Source: Orbicella franksi
Lineage: Eukaryota
Direction: 5' to 3'
Length of the DNA: 64,000 nucleotides
Assembly (NCBI GenBank): GCA_964199315.1
Contig: OZ116703.1
Location: forward strand, 22,072,001 to 22,136,000
A program made the translations under genes and the position numbers. Below are positions 395 to 32,300 of the stretch, piece after piece. Position 1 is the stretch's first letter. The number at the start of each line of letters is the position of its first letter. The notes beneath the pieces are model-generated. The model saw only the letters and a list, made by a program, of their open reading frames with translations, did not search any database and was not told the DNA's origin.

Positions 395-2092
395 CTGCAC
401 ACTCGTCTCAGTCTTCAGTTTCTCTCTACTTATCAGGTCTCTGTGAGCCGAGGAGAGCTGGGCACGCTCTGTGGCCAGTGACCGCCGCTCTTCTTGGATT
501 TGAGTCATGGTGGTTCTTTGCTCTCGCACCAGGTCATCACGGGCGCGCTGTACCTAAAGGCAAGAAAACAGCCACGTTGGATGTCATCATCATCTTTCCT
601 CATCGCGCCAGTAGGCGCGTAAGGCCGTCACGCTCTCAGCCAAACATATTGAATATGACAGGTCACCAATGGGTTTTGGAGCGGGTGTGATATCGACTCA
701 GTGAATTATTGAGAATTTAGTATCATACGACCAAAGCCAACTGTGATCGCGCCAGTCCACTGTGGTTTTCATTTTGCTCGCACTCTCAGGGTTGTTTTGT
801 CCCGCTCGTGCGTTGATCCATACACTTTCACTTGAATCAAATGGAAACACCCACATAAAGAGGTAAAATTGTAATCTTATCTTCCCCGCCAAATAGTTTT
901 ATTTCGCCGACAAGCGTGATTAACCGTACATAGATACACGGGTTACAAAACAAAAGCATACTGAGGCTACAAAAACACTCCAGTTCGCAGGTTATAAACT
1001 ATTCGACCTTTCTTGAAAACGAATTGTGTCTTGTGGCACACTGATCTTTACATACCAACACAGCCAACTGGAGAAGATTTTTTTATCTTTTAAAACTTGC
1101 TTTCCCAGTATTTAAGTCTTAAATTGACTCTTCGCACCGAACGCCAAACAGTTCTTTTATTGTTTGTTTTGAGAATTTGGTGGTACATCACTGAAGACAC
1201 TTTGCCTTACCTATGACTTCCTTCATCTTGGTCACTTGTATACTTCAGTCAAAACGAAAATTGATTAAGATTATTTACCTCAGCTCTTTGTGAAGACAGC
1301 TGTTCCATTGTGATTCGTCGCTCGTCCTCCAGTGCTGCCTGAAGAGCCTTCAGTCGAGACTCCTCCTGAGACAAACGCCATCTCTCTTGATCAACCTGAC
1401 GCGTCTGTTCACGCATGTGTAGTTCCATCTTGGAGACCAGGCCTGTAAGAGAGAAAAAGCGTGTATTTGGCTGGTAAGTGAACTTGTTATAAAAAATCTC
1501 AGTTATTCATAGTTTTTAGTTATTTACTACGAACAAGTAATGAAATTACTTACCTTGTAACCTGGTCCTTTCTTCGTCATTTTCAGATTGCTGCCTGTGC
1601 AACCTCTCCTGCAGTTGTTTCAAGTACTCGTCCCGGGCCCTGGCGGAGAGTTCGCGCTCATCAAGACCACTCTTATGAGTGACCTCGATCTTCTGACGTA
1701 AGTCGCTCACTTCACGAGTCGAGTTTAACACTTGATCCATGAGAGACTGGAGCGACTTGGTGTGAGCATGCGCACTGGTAGCCGCTGACACCTCTTGCTC
1801 TTTGAGCCTTCTCAGATGCGCGACCTCTTCTTCGTGCTCTGCGCGAAATTGCTCTAACGCTCGCCGATGAAGGTCTTTTAGTGTTTCTATCTCGTTGTTT
1901 TTCGCTGTCTCTAGAGCTGAAAGTTTTCGGTTGTGAGATGTTTGTAAGTCAGCTTTTTCAGTCTCCAAGATTCTTAACTTTTCGCTATTTTGCTGGATGA
2001 TTAGGTCGGTCTCGTCTTTCAGTCTTTGTTCGCGACGTTGATAAGAGTCTTCCAAAGTCTTCAAGTGAGATCTTGCGAATAATGAAAGGTAG

Positions 2093-2126
<34 letters not shown>

Positions 2127-2170
2127 TCCAATTTAAGCAATTGGAAAGAAGAAGCCTGAAAAAATCAGGA

Positions 2171-2201
<31 letters not shown>

Positions 2202-2268
2202 GATACCGGTGCGATGCTCACCAACTGAGCTATGAAGCCACACATTGGTAGAGCATCGCACCGGTATC

Positions 2269-2299
<31 letters not shown>

Positions 2300-2343
2300 T
2301 CCTGATTTTTTCAGGCTTCTTCTTTCCAATTGCTTAAATTGGA

Positions 2344-2374
<31 letters not shown>

Positions 2375-5300
2375 ATCTACAACCGCAGTTCATATATGAA
2401 TTATTTCATATAAACTTCACAATGAAAGGTAGATTAGTAAAAGAAATTGCACAACAATAGCAGTTACGGAGCTAGCACACAACATATCTGGTGTCAGGAA
2501 ATGTGTCTGTCGTATTCCTCTATATATCAACAAATACTACAGCCGGTCCGCACGATTCTGTATGCCGATCGACAAGGTGAAAATTGTTGGGTACATAATA
2601 CAGCACCACTCCATTTCTTTCATTATTTTACAGCATTCCGTGTTGCTTCAACATTCAGCTTCACATGATGCATAGTTTAGCACGAGCTGTTTGTTCTTTC
2701 ATTTCTGTATCATAGGCGGTTTACTGACTTATTACTTTTCCCAAGGAAGCCAAGAAGGAACATGTCTTAACCCTATGCCATGTGTAATTCAGCCTAGCAA
2801 GCTCTTGTCATAAAGTTTCAATGTTTTAAAACTGGACTCAAATAAACACGTTTCTGGATATGAATAGAACATTTTTACATGAGGTGGACTTTTCGCTCGA
2901 TTACCACCCGCTGTAAAAACAAAAAAAACAAAAAAAACAAAAACGAGCTAATATTACAATCCTCCCCTAAACATCTCTTCTTTAGGTGGTGTAGGAACTG
3001 GACTCGACGAAGCGGGGAAAATCGAGGCGTGGATAAAAGAGGGTGAAAATCAGACAAATAACCCAAGCGACAGGTGAAGGTGTGATCTCTCAACTGCTGG
3101 GTTGAATAACAATTTTCTTACTTGTGAGAAGAATCGATATTAGTCAGTTCATCCTTGTGTCTCGTTTTCAGTGCCTCAATCGTGGACAACAATTGCTCTC
3201 GCTCAAGTTCTAAACGGCGGACCTGGATAAAGGTAAAGTTTACCCATAAGTATTCGTGAAATGGATAAAAAAAAAATCAAGGTACAATGTACAAAGATTT
3301 ATAAGTGCATGTCCATAACCATTGTTTCGCTCATTAAATTTTTTCTTTGGTGACGTTCTTGTTGCCATTGCCGTCATGGTTTGTTTAAGCTCCTGAGTGG
3401 CTAATCAAAACGAACGTACACAACATAGACAACCGATAGCTTCAAACCAACAACTGCCTTGTAGTACATAAAGGTAGCAGGTGCAAGTTTTTTTACAGCA
3501 GCAACAGAGAAGAGTTCTGAAAAAACCATCAGTTAAATAAAAGAGAGAAATCTCACCTTTCCTTCTAACTCTGACACCTTACTCGTGGCGTCCAAGTCCT
3601 TCTTGTGCCTGATGCCCTCCATCTCCTGTACTTTCTTCATCAGCTCTTTCACTTCTTCCTCAAGCCGCATCTTCTGCTGTTCGCGGTGTTCACTTGCCAC
3701 CTCATACTCCATCAATCGACTCTGCTGCAGCTCACTCTCAGCTTTCAGCTTTGTCATTTCGAGTCTTTCCAGCGATGTTGGTTGAGGGATCTGGGGCGAT
3801 GATTGAAATCCAGCAGGGGACTGGTACTGAGGCTGGTAGGAAAGGGTCTGGGGTAGATTGTGGCCGGTAGGCAAAGCGAAAGGAGAAGATTGGTACTGAG
3901 GATACGATTGATGAGTGTATGGCTGGGCTCCCATTTGCGGTGGAATGTTGCCCTGAGGGGAGATGGGACTGGCTGTATATGGCTGCTGTGATGGATATTC
4001 CTGTGGATGGGGAGGGCCGAGTTGTACTGGAACTGACTGCGGGGGTGGTACATGTGATACTGCAGTAGGTGTTGAAGCAGGAGGAACGACACTGGCCTGT
4101 GCAGGGTACAGCTGTGATCCAGGCTGAACTTGTACTGGAGGTCGATTAACCGGTTGCTGTTCAGTTCCAGGTCTGGGTGTGTCCTGATTAATAGATGCTT
4201 GGCGTTTACCTTGCATACCTCTCCTTCTAGCTTCCTCGTTATCTAAGGGACTACCCTCACCCTGACCCTGCTGCGGCCTGTCTAGCGGACCTCCCTGATC
4301 AGCTGCCAGCTGCTGCCTGTCAAGGGGACCCTCCTGTCCAGCTGTTGGCTGTGGCTTATGCACAGGACCACCCTGACTAGGTGCAGGATCTGGTGTATCC
4401 AGCGAACTTTGTGGACTCGCCTGATCACGCCACCGTCTTCCTCTCCTTGGACTGCCTCCTGGTGACTCCCATGGGAAAGATGACGACCTGACAAATCAAT
4501 CAATCAATCAATCAATCAATTAGCCAATTAGTCAGTCAGTCAATCAATGGGCAGTCAGTCAGTCAGTCAGTCAATTTATCAGTGAGTCAGGCAGCCAATT
4601 AGTCTATCGGTCACCGCTTCGAGAATGAGGCCATGAACGAGCATTTGCCATGAACCTCCACTTTAGGTTAAGCATGACAGGGAAAACGCGCACTTTCGCT
4701 GAAAATCCTACTTGCTTATAAACTTACTTGCCGCTGTCATCAGCTGACTCCACCTGTTTTGGCTTTGGAGGCTCGTCAGGAGTGATTCCCAGCATGCGTA
4801 AGAACTCATCATTATCACCGTCCCCCCGGCGCCGGCCGGCCCTTCTTGGCGGAGACGCTTGCCTCTCTTGACGTTCCGGGGGAGCTGAACTCGGAGAAAT
4901 GACATAACGTTAAAGGGTTGTGGAAAACGAACAGGAATGGAAAAAGAAGTGTTAGGCAAGCAACTTGTAACAATGAAAGGAAAAACATGCATGTACCTTG
5001 TGTGCTTGGCGAGTCCTTTGCGCTCTCTCTGGGAAACGGTGTGTTTGTTTTGAGGGGAACTTCATTTAGATCCAGGCCTCCATCGTCATCGCCACCGCCC
5101 AGTCCTAACCAGTCTCCCCCGCCGCCGCCGCCGCCTCCACCACTGGGTTTTGATCCTGAAGACAAGAACACAGTGACATCAAAAGATGAAGCAAACGACG
5201 TTGAAAGGAGGGGCTGTTTCCTTGAGGTAATCAGAAAACTCCAATATACGTCTAAAGTAAAGTGCGTTACTAGGAATTCAAGACGCACCGATTTTCTAGA

Positions 5301-8300
5301 AGACATTTAAAATCATTTCTCATCATTTCTCCGGTAATATTGTTCGCACCTTAAATAAAAATAAATCGAAAAAGGGCGATGCACTGCCTACATTTTTTGC
5401 GTTCCCAATTTATCTAGCCGTATTAAACGTGTCAGACCATATTAGGTCAGTTATAAGCTTTTTCGATTCGCTAGAGTTTTCAAGGTTTCTGTGGTTAAAT
5501 CGCAGAATTTTTCTTATCATTGTCTGTCTGTCTCCGTGCCGTGAGGCGTCAATTCGATGTTGATATCAATAGGGAGGCGCCTCATGGAGCCTGGCCAGAG
5601 CCCTTGTGTTCAGTCCTTTACCCATGCCTCCATGCCCCCGGACATTGAAATGGGTGCTGACGAATCATGGACTGACCTGACAAAATGCGGGAGAAAACCT
5701 GCGATGGTCTAGCATTCCATCCAGGGGAGGGAAAGTACAATATTCCTAGCCCCTGCAAGCTCAGCAGGCTGGAGTTTTAAAGTTCCAGCCCTGATGAGCT
5801 ACTGGGTTGCCCCCAGGAGCGTAGCTATGGGGGGGGGGGGGGGGGGGTCCTGTCCAACTTCTGGTTTCTCGATTCTCACGCTAAGAACAATACCACGGCA
5901 ACTGGAAGTGCTTTTTGCGTACAGAAACGAACAAGACTTTATCTGTTCTGCTGAAAATATAGCATAAATTTATTTAAGCTACTTTTTTTTTATCTTTTTC
6001 GATTAATAAAGCTACCACTGAACTAAGGGAGCCGTAAATAAGTAAGCCACATCAATCCCTTCATTTAATCAGTTTTTTATTTCAGCAAGAGTTCTGACTG
6101 CGTGTAGTCATTAGTATACGCAGAAGGTGCCGTTTATCGATGATAGCAACAATGAATGTTCTGAACCATAGCATAGTATGGCTGGTTCTACGATCACTGT
6201 GATACGCGATTTCTGAACCAAGACATTTTCCGCAGTATGTCCATGATAGCGTGTCGAATGTGTCTCATCTTCCAGCAGTAAATTACTGGGTTCAAAGATG
6301 AGTTGAGGTACATTACCGTCCACGAATAAAGCAAAATTCTTTTAAATTCGATATTGGGACCACCGATGTTATGAACGACCAAACTGATAGTGAAAGGCAA
6401 ATAACAAACCAAAAACACAATGTATACGTAGAAGGTACCGACCGCAGATTTAATAAGGCTAACAAAAATTGCCATTTCGCTGTTCTCTGCAACTTGCTGA
6501 ACTTGCAGGGACTGAATCTGATTCCTGTGGCGTTGTACTGCTACATAAATTCTGATGTAGGCCACTGTTGTAACGAGAAGACCAATAACTCCAAGAAATA
6601 AAATAATAGGTGAGTAGATATCGGGCGGAATCCAGAACACCATCAAAGGAACAAACACACTAAGCAGCCATATTGAGATCACCCCGGCAACAACACGCTT
6701 TTGAGTCACAAGTTCCTGATATCTGAGATGAAGATGAATAGCTAGGAGCCCGTCTACACTTAGAGCCACAACACTCAAGAAAGAGGCCAAGGAAAACACA
6801 CTTATAATGGATATAAATACCATATAGATGTTACAGCCGGGGTTGTTTTGTTGTAACCATTTTACCAGAAGTGAGGTGTAAAAAGGCTGCCCCAACAAAC
6901 CAACACCAACATCAGAAACAGCAAGACTCACGAGCAATGTTTTCAAAGTCTTTGGTAACGATGAAGTTTTTCTTATAGCGTGAATTGTCACAATATTCAA
7001 CATGACGGCGGTATAGGAAAGAAAAATATTCACGACACAATTACCAATGTAAGTTAAACGGAGGTCTGCAAATTCGATTATTTTGGGGAAGGTCTGCAGC
7101 AGCAATTCACAAGCTGATTTCCTCATCGTCTGGACAGAAGTTTCTTCAAGTGACCGAGCGTTTCACATAAATTTTACCAAGCTAAGACAGTTTCCTTTCT
7201 CAACGACACAAACCACTGGGTTCCCTTAAGCTAATATGAGTAGTTCTTCTTGATTAAAGTCATAACCCTTAGTAAACGAAGTCTTTCCGCAACAAGTCAA
7301 TTCAGGTGTCATGTTGTCACCCGCCACTTCAGACATCTTGTTGTCATAAAATAAAGTTAATACTAGTTCTTCCTAATTAAGCCATAACACTAAGTAAACG
7401 AAGTATTTCCGCAACAAGTCAATTCAGATGTTCTGTTGTCATAAAATAGAGTTAAAACTGACAGTAAGTGAATCGTGATGAAGAATTAATACGTGGGTCT
7501 TGAACTTTCTAATAATTGATTAGAATAAAACCAAGACATAAACGTCAATGGCGCGACAATGTGTTTCCAAAAAACATAAGGAAAACTGGCCCGAAATTGG
7601 ACATTTCAAAGGTGATAATTGAAATTTCGTTAAGGATGTTACCGAACGAAGACCCTTAGCTACATGCTTGAACAAAAATAAGTCAGCACGTGCACATGAA
7701 TATTTCCCATGTTCAAAAATAAGGCAAAACGAAACAGGTGTCTTTATAAAGTCGTTTCGTTGCTAATCAATGGCACACCTACATACTGCTTTCAGTTTCA
7801 AGGGCCGGGCATGTGGAGTGCACAACGAACTCTCCATCACCAAGTGTCGGTGATAGCTTTACCAACAGTAATGAATTGTTTGAAGATCAGCACAACATGA
7901 AGAAGAACACTTGCTATAAATAATAAAGATTGTTTTTAGCACTTTAACCCTTTGCTTCGTCATAACGATGAAAACGTCATTAATAAATAGCGCACCTTTT
8001 GTACTATGATCACATCCGGTTTACCAATCCAGAAAACCATGACAATTGTTTAACAAACTCAGCGACTCGAATAGCGACCTAAACTATAAGCCGCCTAACA
8101 CGAATATCGCTACTAAGACACTAATAAACTTAATGTTGGTCCCAGAGTCTCCCCGAGAACTGGTTAGAAGCAGGAGAGATCAATGGTAACGAGACCATTT
8201 GAATTCATTCATTCATAATTTTCTTAACGCGGTACAATAGACAGGACGAAGCAGACTAAGGCACACAATGAATATTTCACGCTCTTTTCTGTTTCATTTC

Positions 8301-26300: not shown

Positions 26301-29300
26301 AGGTATATTAAAGAGGCTCAGTCATGGTTTGTGCATATTGAGAAGTTTAGCCTTAATTTTTCAAATTCGTTGTTTATAATGCGTGTTAATCCTCTCCATC
26401 CTTAGCCATTGTTGTTCCTTTATGGTTTATCATTATATAACTCTTTGGTGTTTTTCTATCTTATTTAAGGGCATTTTCCACAGTTACGGACGTTACATTC
26501 AGAGTCATTTTTGAAACTTTAATCTAGCACAGGCAAAGGATAGGAAGAGATTGTCCAATGTTACATTGCTGATCATGTTTGTGCCTGCTGACGCATTAAT
26601 TGAGTTATAAAAGTTTTCCACTTGACTGGCCTATATTTTAAAATAGAGCAAAAAACACACCGTTACGGATGTTACATAAAAAACAACCACATGAGCCAGA
26701 GCACTGGTATTAATGGAAAATTCCTGTGAAGTGTCAGGGCTTATTGCATGAACTGCTCCAAATATTTGAAGTATAGTAGTTGTGTGAACCAAAAAGCTTA
26801 ATTTAATTTAAACTGGCTTTCGCAATTATATAATGCTATGTGAACTTTAACGTTACGGATGTAACAGCCAATGTTACGGACGTTACACTGTGTGAATTAT
26901 TATAAAATGCACACAATAAATCAGCTTTTTTTGTATTGTTGGCCACAGTTTTTTGGACATATAAGTTTAAAAAGGCTTGTATTTAACATTTTATAAATCA
27001 AACTGGTTGGTACTTTATGTTAAAGGCGTGAAATGTCCCAACACAGTATGAAGGACACTACATTCATTTTACATAATGTACTCAGCTTTGAGCATGCTCT
27101 TTGCAAACTATCTGAGCCCACAGACATATACTGGACTCCAGTGAATATAATTAATTCCTTCTCTAAAACACTGCTTTCTTTGAGAATTCACATATCCAAA
27201 AATGCGTTTAACTATGGCAGAAAGAGTCCGAAATCACAGAAAAAAAATCAAAGAAAATGCAGAAAAGCATGCAGCACATAAAGAGAAAGACAGACTTAGG
27301 AAAAGAGAAAGTAGAAAGAAAGCTGTTGATCCAAGAAAAGCTGAACTTGAAAGAAAGAAGTGTAGGGAAAGAGTGCGATTGCACAGGCTTAAGAAAAAGT
27401 TGTCTGCCTCACATGTACAAGATCCTGGTGACACTCCTGTAAGCTATGCTTACAAAACTCCACAAGCACTGGGTAAAGCAGTACACAAAGTTTCACCATT
27501 ACTACCAAATAGCCCAAGGAAACAAAAAGCTGTAATCGAAAAGATTGCAAAGTCACATGGACTTCCACTTTCAAGTGAACACCAGAAATCCACTGGCAAC
27601 AAGTGCATTGCCAAGTCCACAGTTAACTGTGTTTAAGAATTTTACTACCGAGATTCCATTTCTCGACAAGCACCAGGGCGTAAAGACTATGTTATCATGA
27701 AAGAGAATGGGAAGAAGTTGAAACTACAAAAGAGGCACTTGATGTGGTCACTGAAAGAGACATTTGGACTGTTTCAGAAAGAGAACCCTCAGGTAAAGAT
27801 TGGCTTCAGCAAATTCTGCTCTCTTAGACCAAAGAATGTTCTGCTGCAAGCATTCATGCCACGGCAGGTTTGTCTCTGCCAGTATCATGACAACGTGAAG
27901 TTGCTCTGCGAATGCCTCACAAAAGAAATCCAAAGTTTTCCTTCCTACTCTGCAGCATTTGTTGATAACTTTGTCTGCGATAGCAATAAAGAAGAATGCA
28001 TGATGAGCAAATGTGGTTCATGTCCAGCCTGGCTTGATGCAGTCAAGGAAGATGCTGCTCTGGATGAAATTGTTCAGTGGCAACAATGGGAGAGAGTTTC
28101 TCATCAAGTTCAGTCCAAACAAGGCAAACCCAAACTGGTGAAGAAGATGGAGAAAGTCACCAAAGAGGGAATTGTTGAAGAAGCCTTGCATTCTCTTCAA
28201 AGTAAAATGCCTTCATTCTTGGAGCATGTTTTTGTAAAGAGGAAACAAGCAGAATTTTTTGAAAAACGCACAGCCAGATGAAGCTGTTGTCCACGTTGAT
28301 TTTGCTGAAAATTATACCTGTCAGCATCAAGACGAAGTTCAAGCAGCGCATTGGAGTCAGCAACAGGTTACACTCTTTACTGTTGCAATTTGGACTAAAG
28401 ATTCGGATGACAACACAAAGTGCAGTTCACATGTTATAGTCAGTGATGACCTCGACCATGACAAGAAATCAGTTACTGTTTTTATGGATATTGTGGTAAA
28501 CAATTTTGTCAAGAAAAATTTTCCACAGGTTAAAGTTGTCGACATCTTTTCTGATGGGCCCACCTCCCAATTTAAAAACAGGTACATGGCTGGCTTCTAC
28601 CATACTCTTCAGAGAAAGGGACTAAAAATAAAGTGGCACTTTTTTGCCACTTCCCATGGCAAAGGAGTGGTTGATGGCTTGGGAGGAACAGTAAAAAGGA
28701 TGGTGTGGACTGCAGTATCCACGAGGAAAGTGGCAAATGTGCAGGACGCAAAATCCTTTGCAAACGTTGCAGCACAATTCTGCAAATCAATCAACATTCA
28801 ACTATGTCTTAAGAAGGATATTGATGAATTAGGCAGTGGTCTTGTACTGGACAAATGCTTTCAAAAAGCCACAGCTATCCCAGGAATTAGCAAGGTCCAC
28901 TGCATAGCACCAGCAGAGAATGGTCAAGTACATTGTCTCCTTTATTCAAGTCAGCTATCTGTTCTTCATGAGATTGAACGATCAAATGATGCTGAAGAAA
29001 CCTGTAGTGACTCAGTCAATGAAATAACCAGATCTGAAGTCAGTGACGGTTCCTGTAACAACAGTGGGGACAGTGGGGATGAAGAGAGTAGTGGCGATGG
29101 AGGTAGTGATGGTGATGTTGCTGATGATGAAGATGACACGCCATTGTGCACATATGCTACATTACCAGCTGACACACCTATGACTGATGAAGAGGAAATT
29201 ATTATTCAGATACAGCAAGGCTTGCCTGACCACATCAGGGCAATTCTTAATGACCACTGCACTGAATTCCAAATTCCTCCATTCAGCAGTCTAATGGCAG

Positions 29301-32300
29301 GGCTAATTATTAGTGAAGCCATTGACTTTAAGGGTGATCCCTTAATTGACATAAGGGACTTGAAAGAGCTCGAAGGAAAAGCTGTAGAAGATGAATCAAA
29401 GTGGGTTACAAATTTTATTGTTGATGCATATCTACAGCTAGTCAAGGCTGAAAGTGCTCAAAAGGGTGTTAAAGTGGAAATTTTTCGATGGGAAGAATTT
29501 GAAAAGCTGGTGCAAAGGCAGACCCTGAAAGATCCTCTGACAGACAAAGATGACCTTTTCAAACAAGATGCAGTTTTCTTTCCCTGCAATGATACTGAGG
29601 GTGAACATTGGTTCCTTGGAGTGATGTTTCCTCAGGAAATGTGTATCATAGTGTTCGACAGCTTGCCAGGTCAGTTTGTTAAGCCAACTGTCTTAAAGCG
29701 AGTGGAAATGATGGTGTCACTTCTTTTGAAAGCTGACCGGTCGACTGATGTCAGCCAGTGGTCTTTCTATTCAAACAAGCCTGGTGAGATTCCAGAACAG
29801 AATAATACCTATGACTGTGGAATTTTCAGTTGCCTATATGCAAGATGTGTGGCTACAAGATCTGTGATGATCCCTAAAACTGAGGTTCTGGCATACAGGC
29901 AACTGATGATCCAAGAGTTGCACCAGAAAAGCCTTTGCCCAATTCCACCACCAACTATTCAACCAGGGGAATACTATGCAGTTGATTACGTCAAAACCTA
30001 TTATTTTGGGAGAGTAATGAAGAAAAGTGGCAGTTTTGTAGAATTCAAGTTCCTGCACAGAAATAGTGCCAGTACTTTCCATTGGCCTAGACGAGATGAC
30101 GTGGACACAGTCCACTTTTCAAACATTTTTTCTGATCCAGTAACTGTTCCCCAATTTATCAGTGGGCCTTTTGAAATTCCGGAGCTGCCTGCTGTGGAAA
30201 AACTTTTCAAAGTTATAAGGAAACACAAGAAAGTTTGAAAAACTATCAAGAGAAATAACTGTTTAACCAGAATACTAATTCCATTGATGTTAGGTGCAAC
30301 AAGTTAATGTTTAAAAAGACAAATTGTCTTTGAGTGTAATGTTTGGGTTCTTGAGACTTTTTCAAATGTAAGCTTCAAGAATTGTAACGTCCGTAACGTA
30401 ACGTCCGTAACAAAGTTTTCTTACCATTATTTGGAAAATGTTGCAGTTTTTCAGGGACTGCTTTTTACCAAAGTGTTTCTAAAGAATATTTAGCTTTGTG
30501 GCAGAAATATCTTTGAAATCTTTTAAATAGTTATTTTAAGAATGGAAAAAGATTGTGTAAACATTACGGACGTTATGTAACGTCCGTAACAAAATTTACT
30601 TTGTTAATAACTATTTTTTTTAAAAAGTTCAGGGTGAAATTTATATTTTTTATGTATTAACTCCTTTGAGGTATTTCTTCTGATATAACTGTTTGTAGAC
30701 ACAAATCATTTCCAAGTTTTATATAGCAAGTTAAAAATTTGTCTCTCACCTATTGTTTATTATTAAAAAATAAACACTTACTTTGGAGACCCCCCCTGAA
30801 TGTGTTGCTATCACAAGCAAACTGAAACTTATTTTTCTATGTACTATAACTTGTCAACAACATAGTACAGGGTATGATTTTAAGTCCAACCACTTTTTAA
30901 AAATCTGGATTTTTCACATTCTCACATGGAATTGCCCTTAACTGCTATTTTCAGGTTTCCTACCATTTAGGTAGTTGTGTATGTGGCCAAAATAACTCAA
31001 AATACCTTGACTGAGCTCCTTTAAGACAAAAATGGTAATCATAACAATTTAACACTTTGCTTAATTTCCGACTTGATCAAAACTCACTGAGGTTGTAGAA
31101 CGGCCCCTTGTATCTGTTTGTTGCTGAGAACTTGAACCAAATATGTCATCTAGAGACGACAAAAAAAAGAGCAAGATGTGAACTTTATATTTTAATTGGT
31201 GACAAATTTAATATATAATTATTACAAAGAATTATAGTACAAATGGGTCAAGCATCCCTGCCAATTAATAAAATTAATAATTTGATTTCATTTTTTTTAA
31301 CTTTCACCTTTTAATTTTAGCATATTCTTCACTGAGACTTCACAGTACTACCTACTGTGTATTAGTATAAATCTACTAGCGTTCTATCATGAATGTCATT
31401 CTCTGACTGGTTACGCTACTCACTATCTATTCTGTGATATATAGTGAGTAGCGTGGCAGTGTGCCCTTGTTAACAAAATTATGGCCGCTTCTTGTTGTTT
31501 TCAAACTGTCTATGAAGAGGATTTAGATAAAGTTTGAATGACTACTAGTTTTCTACTAAAACAATTAGATTTCTTGCTCTAGATTTCCATGCGTGATAGT
31601 TGACTCAGGCTGCACCCTCATCAACTATCATGCAATAGAAATCTTGAGCTCATAATCTAATAGTTTAATACATAACAAATAAAACATCAAATTTGAACCA
31701 AGTACTAGTTAATAATTATCTGGAGTGCTTGGTCTTAAAATCCTGGCTTTAGATGACAAAGTTGTGCTGTGCTGTGGGTTTTTGCTCACAAACCTCAACA
31801 TTTTTCAAACCTTTGTTTAATCCACAATTTATTGTGTGGAAATAAAGAAACTAGAAAAATAAACTTGAAAGCTTACCATCATTACCACCCAGAATGGAAT
31901 CTAAATCCTGATCTAATGCTGCTCGGCCGGAAGCTGGAAATATCAAATGTAAAGCTTACGACACAATGCCTACCATACTGTTGATATCACCAATTTAACC
32001 CTTTCTCTCTCAGTGTTAAAGGGACACAGTCAGCTGTGGGACCACGCTGACCTGGACACTAGTTTTCTCACTTTGAAAAAAGCCCACCTCAACCTGAAAT
32101 CAAAGTACATCTAGAAATCTGCGTCAATCTTTGCACTGTTTGCTTGATTTTCAATAGTTTACTGAAAAACCTGTTTTTGAGTGCGTTTTTGCTCATCCTA
32201 TGATATCATTTTTATCATATTTGGTTAAAAAAAAAGTATGGATTGCATCTCTGTGATGTGCAAATTAGCTATGAAACGGAATCTAATGCGCATCTGTGCC

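Follow-up and report, generated by a model that had tools for sequence, protein, structure and literature searches.

Proteases of the Ulp1 type (Peptidase_C48 in Pfam; C48 below) have been documented in several kinds of transposon, namely Mutator, Ginger1, CACTA and Helitron-like elements (PMC2836005, PMC6117577). The Ginger1 transposases of Hydra bear either an OTU or an Ulp1 domain, and in 2010 those who defined Sola did not list Sola among the Ulp1-bearing elements (PMC2836005). Here we report that a stretch of 64,000 nucleotides from the coral Orbicella franksi (contig OZ116703.1, positions 22,072,001 to 22,136,000 of the forward strand; the whole stretch is referred to as the window, and positions are counted within it) holds, at 26469-30937, a copy of an autonomous Sola2 element, a cut-and-paste DNA transposon that is present in three near-identical copies and whose transposase contains a SUMO-protease-like domain in frame. 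Sola2 is a further superfamily in the known, recurrent theme of Ulp1 cargo, and we have not found the Sola2-Ulp1 fusion described: our search of the literature, with Repbase and Dfam lying outside it, found no paper that ties Sola to Ulp1, C48 or OTU, and C48 goes unmentioned in a survey from 2025 of the domains found together with those of transposons. An initial annotation, made from the letters of the window, had likewise known of no such architecture for Sola, and we found no open paper that describes one; in speaking of an undescribed system, it overstated the case, as the theme is known from Mutator, CACTA, Ginger1 and Helitron-like elements.

The coral element resembles Ginger1 in being a cnidarian cut-and-paste element with transposase and Ulp1 in one frame, and in having sister lineages that carry OTU instead. 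It differs in that the catalytic domain of Ginger1 is an unrelated, Gypsy-integrase-like DDE domain, and in that the protease lies at the C-terminal end in Ginger1 but internally, ahead of a retained barrel, in the coral element. Peptidase_C48 is also carried by Mutator (Kaonashi), CACTA and Helitron-like elements in plants and animals. In the plant elements, however, C48 mostly occurs as a gene of its own or as a piece that was captured, whereas in the coral element it is in frame, and the plant domains lie farther from SUMO proteases than DEN1 does and are poorly expressed (PMC6117577), whereas the coral domain is SENP1/2-like and under purifying selection.

The protease within the transposase gene

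The gene occupies 27202-30238 on the + strand, is intron-less and, where intact, encodes in 1015 codons a protein that leads from a basic N-terminus through a Cys/His cluster, the DDD catalytic core and an acidic linker to a C48 protease and a C-terminal barrel. When the genome from which the window comes (497 Mb, 805 contigs) was searched at the DNA level, two further copies of the element came up at ~99% identity, on contigs C8 and C15. The C8 copy is intact and holds the uninterrupted 1015-codon frame (locus L002, 2232-5279; identical to database protein P0001). The gene is broken in the window. Compared with the C8 frame, it is interrupted twice here: a C>T change makes a nonsense codon of 27634-27636 (T in this copy only; the other two copies and every RNA read have C), and 11 bp are missing after 28273, which shifts the frame (site 28273-28274; confined to the window copy in the three-copy alignment, with the undeleted form present in a contig from an RNA run), while the C15 copy has a 5-bp deletion and a stop of its own. 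The frame at 28259-30238 to which the initial annotation had drawn attention is indeed open for 659 codons and contains every motif quoted from it, as the open reading frame listing and a codon check confirm, and it is the distal part (the 3' two-thirds) of the gene; upstream of it, in another phase, the listing gives open frames at 27202-27636 and 27697-28281. We rejected the 'TTG start' of the 659-codon frame as an artefact of the listing, the true gene start being 27202, and we rejected introns as the cause of the split frames because the intact C8 copy is a single continuous frame.

The protease is encoded at 29204-29935 (+), where Pfam Peptidase_C48 matches residues 403-535 of the 659-residue frame (E 4.8e-15; 56.4 bits, the cut-off being 20.7), so that an Ulp1/SENP-type domain fused in frame, with all of its catalytic residues, stands as first proposed. 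A profile of the family matches SENP1 with E 2.5e-24, SENP2 with 7.9e-23, SENP5 with 1.2e-17, yeast Ulp1 with 2e-12 and SENP8 with 8.7e-6, and its alignment to SENP1 places WLsnFviDeY on WLNDEIINFY, HW on HW, lDSl on YDSM and IPQQeNeyDCGvF on IPQQMNGSDCGMF. The residues H806, D823 and C876, the oxyanion residue Q870 and the tunnel residues W738 and W807 all align to SENP1 and are all present in the window copy (codons at 29402-29404 for W738, 29606-29611 for H806 and W807, 29657-29659 for D823, 29798-29800 for Q870 and 29816-29818 for C876). In all 16 full-length relatives H806, W807, D823, Q870 and C876 are invariant, as are the transposase residues D370, D455 and D495, and W738 is kept in at least 90%.

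A model of the protease (predicted local distance difference test score, pLDDT, 85.4) matches SENP1 with Z 23.4 over 213 residues at a root-mean-square deviation of 2.6, Ulp1 with Z 21.4 and the NEDD8 protease with Z 18.1, and its top matches in Foldseek and in a VIA search are SUMO proteases throughout. Because both the profile E-values and the structural Z scores favour SENP1, SENP2 and Ulp1 over the NEDD8 protease, SUMO appears the likeliest substrate of the modelled domain. The earlier description of the domain as SUMO/NEDD8-type can thus be narrowed, with SUMO favoured by the match to SENP1 and NEDD8 disfavoured by the match to SENP8. With human SENP1 and SENP2 and yeast Ulp1 the domain has in common the fold (Z 21-23), the catalytic His-Asp-Cys, the oxyanion Gln and both of the Trp residues that clamp the Gly-Gly tail; unlike them, it forms part of a transposase and lacks an N-terminal targeting region of the host type, and its identity to them in structural alignments is 15-25%.

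We find that the protease is kept by purifying selection within the transposon lineage. Codon comparisons in three pairs among the intact copy and two relatives gave ratios of nonsynonymous to synonymous substitution rates (dN/dS) of 0.34, 0.12 and 0.19 for the protease, of 0.23, 0.10 and 0.08 for the catalytic core and of 0.17 and 0.13 for the barrel, where the second pair was not computable. The acidic Ser/Asp/Gly-rich linker that precedes the protease (28991-29203, +) has 0 conserved columns and gave 0.64, 0.92 and 0.58. In the closest pair the synonymous rate (dS) in the protease is 0.37, and the estimate is therefore not saturated. Neutral decay, which had been named beforehand as an outcome that would speak against the fusion being functional, was not seen.

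Other sequences related to the protease or to its likely substrate occur in the same genome. A separate 443-residue frame is present in three copies, ~97% identical to one another (C1:36232220-36233551, C4:25655079-25655816 and C6:30689003-30689740; L026-L028). The C48 module of this frame makes up its last 241 residues, shares 41% identity with that of the element and has the same start (a GLP motif) and the same end; tandem repeats of ~140 bp come after the frame, the repeat unit is longer than 3.7 kb, and no large frames were seen upstream within the loci examined on C1, C4 and C6. A Rad60-SLD search of the genome found polyubiquitin, a ubiquitin-ribosomal fusion and a Rad60-like domain, and no unspliced SUMO. 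We also note a cluster at C15:2384600-2501200 of many tandem ubiquitin-like repeats (Rad60-SLD/ubiquitin profile), with open frames of up to 664 residues, which is not the ordinary polyubiquitin gene; that gene lies at C3:8177080-8178432.

Sola2 ancestry and the origin of the insertion

The catalytic core of the transposase (28274-28990, +) contains D370 (28298-28300), D455 (28553-28555) and D495 (28673-28675), which are invariant or nearly so among 49 sequences. A model of residues 217-609 built from these sequences (pLDDT 88.8) has RNase H topology, with D370 on strand 1, D455 just past strand 4 and D495 starting the helix after strand 5, and its best structural matches in the VIA search are retroviral integrase cores, IstA and Mos1 (Z 9-10, top 10.1); Foldseek returned weak, generic RNase H-fold matches only. 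Pfam has no match to the transposase part or to the barrel, and a PDB sequence search with the transposase profile gave nothing significant. Ahead of the core lie the basic region (aa 1-70; 27202-27411, +), conserved among full-length relatives, and the Cys/His cluster (aa 216-345; 27847-28238, +), whose C224, C226, H229, C259, C266, C271 and C274 are invariant or nearly so in the 49 sequences and which is probably zinc-binding.

The Sola superfamily reportedly goes back to work by Bao and colleagues in 2009. The catalytic cores of the Repbase references were printed by Majorek et al. in 2014 (PMC3985635, supplementary file 5), and that of Sola2-1_HM of Hydra reads GDFAENYT..QDEIQSYHW..ISDDITHD..FTDG..QYKN..WNFFATSHG. 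The window core has in common with it the blocks DFAENYT, QDE(I/V)Q..HW, (I/V)SDD..HD, F(S/T)DG..Q(F/Y)KN and W.FFATSHG, with ~42 of 103 aligned positions (~40%) identical as counted by eye, while the core blocks of Sola1-1_AP and Sola3-1_HM are different and do not match it. We assign the element to Sola2 because of this core match together with the 4-bp target duplications and the DDD triad, an assignment based on sequence comparison that sharpens the initial call of a Sola-type DDD transposase and leaves it standing. The coral element is like the Sola2 reference in its 4-bp target duplications, its DDD transposase and its core blocks, and unlike it in having a 244-residue C48 module between the core and the C-terminal barrel. 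More distant Sola2-like copies, with 26-30% identity over aa 121-526, are found at C9:20947602-20948903, at C3:14342004-14343311 and elsewhere (L029-L036), and one of them has an open frame of 832 residues, which indicates that there are more Sola2 lineages in the coral genome.

The barrel itself is encoded at 29936-30235 (+), and residues 921-1015 are modelled as five strands and a helix, with pLDDT of 59-80 there. The model matches MRG701 (Z 7.1), PWWP (Z 6.9) and the PHF19 Tudor domain (Z 6.8; deviation 1.7 over 53 residues), and the matches, which include MRG15, span the middling range of Z 5.9-7.1. Conserved aromatic residues are Y928, Y929, Y938, F954 and W965, and an ESM Atlas search with the barrel returned unnamed eukaryotic clusters only. 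The model gives a modest level of support to a Tudor/chromo-like fold. Chromovirus integrases carry a chromodomain and retroviral integrases end in an SH3-like domain; the coral protein is like these in placing a small, predicted C-terminal beta-barrel on an RNase H-fold recombinase, an analogy, and unlike them in that its barrel has no sequence relationship to theirs. By the same analogy, plain DNA binding would be as possible a function of the barrel as chromatin reading.

A protein search gave 288 relatives. In 16 of them, full-length proteins of 968-1061 residues that are 42-78% identical, the whole architecture is in common, while in fish, echinoderms and insects there are relatives of ~700 residues that share the basic N-terminus, Cys/His cluster and core but, by domain profiles, lack the protease. 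With an iterated profile the barrel was detected in 62 of the 67 protease-less relatives that have enough sequence past the core; therefore, the barrel is ancestral to Sola2 transposases and the protease is an insertion placed between the core and the barrel. The Tudor/SH3-like end perceived in the initial annotation, modelled as a five-strand barrel, is thus an old part of the transposase and not an addition coupled to the protease. In a tree of the Cys/His cluster and core, a single 28-row clade (Shimodaira-Hasegawa-like approximate likelihood ratio test, 96) takes in every one of the 23 C48-bearing proteins, and the few protease-less rows in that clade are truncated or deleted models. On this tree, the protease was gained a single time, at the root of one Sola2 clade. 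A library-wide profile search found 116 clusters at E <=1e-30, of which ~30 (at 50% identity) span the protease-barrel junction; the hosts identified by name are the sea anemones Nematostella and Exaiptasia, and run labels point to corals.

Three relatives (P0112, P0158 and P0159) have an OTU domain between the core and the barrel (Pfam E 2.4e-14, 1.6e-15 and 3.1e-9, respectively) and are 44-47% identical to one another over the C-terminal part that was searched. Of these OTU proteins only P0112 is on the tree, where it stands far from the C48 clade. The OTU domain was thus inserted in a second Sola2 lineage independently and convergently, at the same point as C48. We note one further arrangement, in P0040 (Exaiptasia diaphana KXJ09468.1), where a THAP domain (E 2.7e-18) precedes a Sola2 Cys/His cluster, a core and the start of C48; this would be either a different DNA-binding head on a Sola2 transposase or a chimeric gene model.

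Ends, copies and transcription of the element

The element is 4469 bp long and has inverted ends of 11-12 bp, GGGCAWTTCCA...TGGAAWTGCCC. Similarity among all three copies begins and ends at identical bases, window 26469 and 30937. The left terminal inverted repeat, GGGCATTTTCCA (26469-26480, +), has one extra T relative to the other copies and is the inverse of the right end, which by the three-copy comparison is TGGAATTGCCC (30927-30937, - strand). Immediately outside them lies the 4-bp target duplication, TTAA at 26465-26468 and again at 30938-30941, which is CTTT and TGTA in the other two copies. The copies are 99.2-99.3% identical, and their pairwise divergence of 0.7-0.8% indicates that the insertions are very young. 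Six matches to the 14-mer GTTACGGACGTTAC, which contains two GTTAC half-sites, occur in the window (0.00 expected), all within the element: three are on the + strand near the left end (26483, 26662 and 26873, in a subterminal region of 26483-26886) and three on the - strand near the right end (30384, 30398 and 30577, in a region of 30384-30590). By their layout, which is the usual one, these subterminal repeats are probable binding sites for the transposase. A relative from another assembly, L051, whose protein is 78% identical, has the same inverted ends, retains the motif and is flanked by an AGAA duplication.

The L051 relative is 5426 bp long (locus 1915-7340 of ENA assembly ERZ25067868), and a gene of 162 residues has been called just after its transposase gene. 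The coral genome also contains many non-autonomous relatives of ~1.9 kb (L004-L020; for example C3:13327200-13328946, C10:20054297-20056112, C1:29805314-29806816 and C14:13030927-13032449), which have the exact termini of the element at 70-75% identity and keep ~690 bp of its 5' end, the barrel-coding end of the gene and the 3' end, without transposase and protease. The element itself is inserted in a high-copy repeat of at least ~160 bp (window 26308-26468 and 30938 onward), found at 88-91% identity at no fewer than 20 loci.

Of the words of the frame, ~90% are present in assemblies labelled as RNA, which come from no fewer than 11 studies of coral samples. In raw polyA RNA-seq from two runs, 27266-30324 is covered at 2-9 reads per position and coverage is zero at 30325-30646; this fall to zero argues against plain DNA contamination. 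At position 27634 all RNA reads carry the letter of the unbroken copies. RNA reads that join 26463/26465 to 30940 come from uninterrupted copies of the repeat in which the element is inserted, and their length fits a 4-bp duplication. The right flank, at 30969-31100, is covered very deeply in the RNA runs.

Possible roles of the protease

We consider it probable, at a level well short of certainty, that this is a Sola2 element with a tethered, active SUMO isopeptidase that deSUMOylates host proteins and in doing so favours the element's own expression or transposition. The transposase would bind the GTTACGGACGTTAC subterminal repeats through its N-terminal domains and would cut and paste the element, producing the 4-bp target duplications. 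Through the tether the isopeptidase would reach both the transposition complex and the chromatin of the element, where it could strip SUMO from host proteins. The targets might be, in the first place, SUMO-dependent silencing or heterochromatin factors and, next, DNA-repair factors or the transposase itself; whichever the target, the expression or transposition of the element would gain. We rank anti-silencing first because SUMO-dependent piRNA (PIWI-interacting RNA) silencing is documented in Drosophila (bioRxiv 10.1101/2021.07.27.453956). That the protease is an anti-silencing deSUMOylase is purely what we infer.

Several points weigh against a tethered SUMO isopeptidase acting in this way. 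Both the activity of the protease and its substrate are deduced from its sequence and a predicted model, and Sola2-1_HM was compared by eye, on an alignment in print. We know of no demonstration of SUMO-dependent transposon silencing in cnidarians. There are only three copies, two of them broken, and activity is therefore low at best. In addition, the RNA libraries look unstranded and are shallow (2-9 reads deep), so that sense-strand transcription from the element's own promoter is putative. Lastly, the C48 domains borne by plant Mutator elements have been judged unlikely to act on SUMO (PMC6117577).

A broader idea, which we put forward tentatively and hold to be distinctly less probable than a SUMO isopeptidase at work in this one element, is that proteases of ubiquitin-like modifiers are a convergent and functionally required accessory of cnidarian cut-and-paste transposases, stripping SUMO or ubiquitin from silencing or repair factors. 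Sola2 would then, just as tentatively, have gained Ulp1 once and OTU once at the same point, mirroring Ginger1.

The alternative to an anti-silencing role that survives best, and which we regard as possible if rather doubtful, is that the protease serves the transposition reaction, deSUMOylating the transposase or repair factors at sites of excision and integration. Bao, Kapitonov and Jurka proposed such a role for the Ulp1 and OTU domains of Ginger1 (PMC2836005). In the coral element the protease is held covalently between core and barrel, that is, inside the transposition complex, and the ubiquitin-type OTU and Ulp1 seem interchangeable there, which fits a general link with modifiers and repair better than it fits SUMO-dependent silencing. 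Nevertheless, a role in the reaction is compatible with an anti-silencing role and does not exclude it. We think it unlikely that what the domain removes, as an active isopeptidase, is a modifier other than SUMO (NEDD8, ubiquitin or an ISG15/UFM-like protein). Members of the clan do differ in specificity, several bacterial ones being deubiquitinases, the NEDD8 protease still matches the model at Z 18.1, and the verdict on the plant Mutator domains (PMC6117577) points the same way; against this, the profile separates SENP1 (2.5e-24) widely from SENP8 (8.7e-6), and SUMO proteases alone make up the top matches in Foldseek and VIA.

It is very unlikely that the protease processes the element's own polyprotein, freeing the transposase from the C-terminal part as the proteases of adenovirus, poxvirus and African swine fever virus do. 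The structural matches do include viral members of this protease clan, at Z 9-10, but the domain is much nearer SENP1/2 (Z 23), the linker with its 0 conserved columns offers no conserved cleavage motif, and cleavage would cut off the barrel, an ancestral domain of the transposase. Slightly more improbable again is a functionless passenger, either a captured host fragment or a chimeric frame from nested elements. Transposons do capture host fragments, and the coral genome holds only three copies; however, one clade has the architecture in no fewer than 23 of its proteins, which are 38-78% identical, ~30 clusters span the protease-barrel junction, and selection contradicts this explanation, the catalytic residues being invariant and the protease having dN/dS of 0.12-0.34 against ~0.6-0.9 in the linker. 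That the locus is a host gene, a domesticated transposase-SENP fusion, is scarcely credible even though it is transcribed and a Nematostella gene model of the family exists, since it is contradicted by the inverted ends, the target duplications, the three unlinked and near-identical copies, two of them broken, and the deleted non-autonomous relatives with the same ends.

To our knowledge, Ulp1 and OTU domains recur in unrelated transposon superfamilies and a function has been demonstrated for none. Plant examples of transposon-borne Ulp1 had been reported by 2006-2007, and the Sola2 element makes the question of its role testable: its SUMO-protease-like domain is in frame and demonstrably under selection, the insertion point is defined within an otherwise ordinary transposase, and protease-less sister lineages provide natural controls. 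The independent OTU insertion at the same point, and an intact, transcribed and very young coral copy, aid such testing further, and the element is a candidate for the first direct functional test of a transposon-borne Ulp1. If the protease does allow escape from SUMO-dependent silencing, or the steering of repair, it would represent a new kind of counter-defence in animal transposons.

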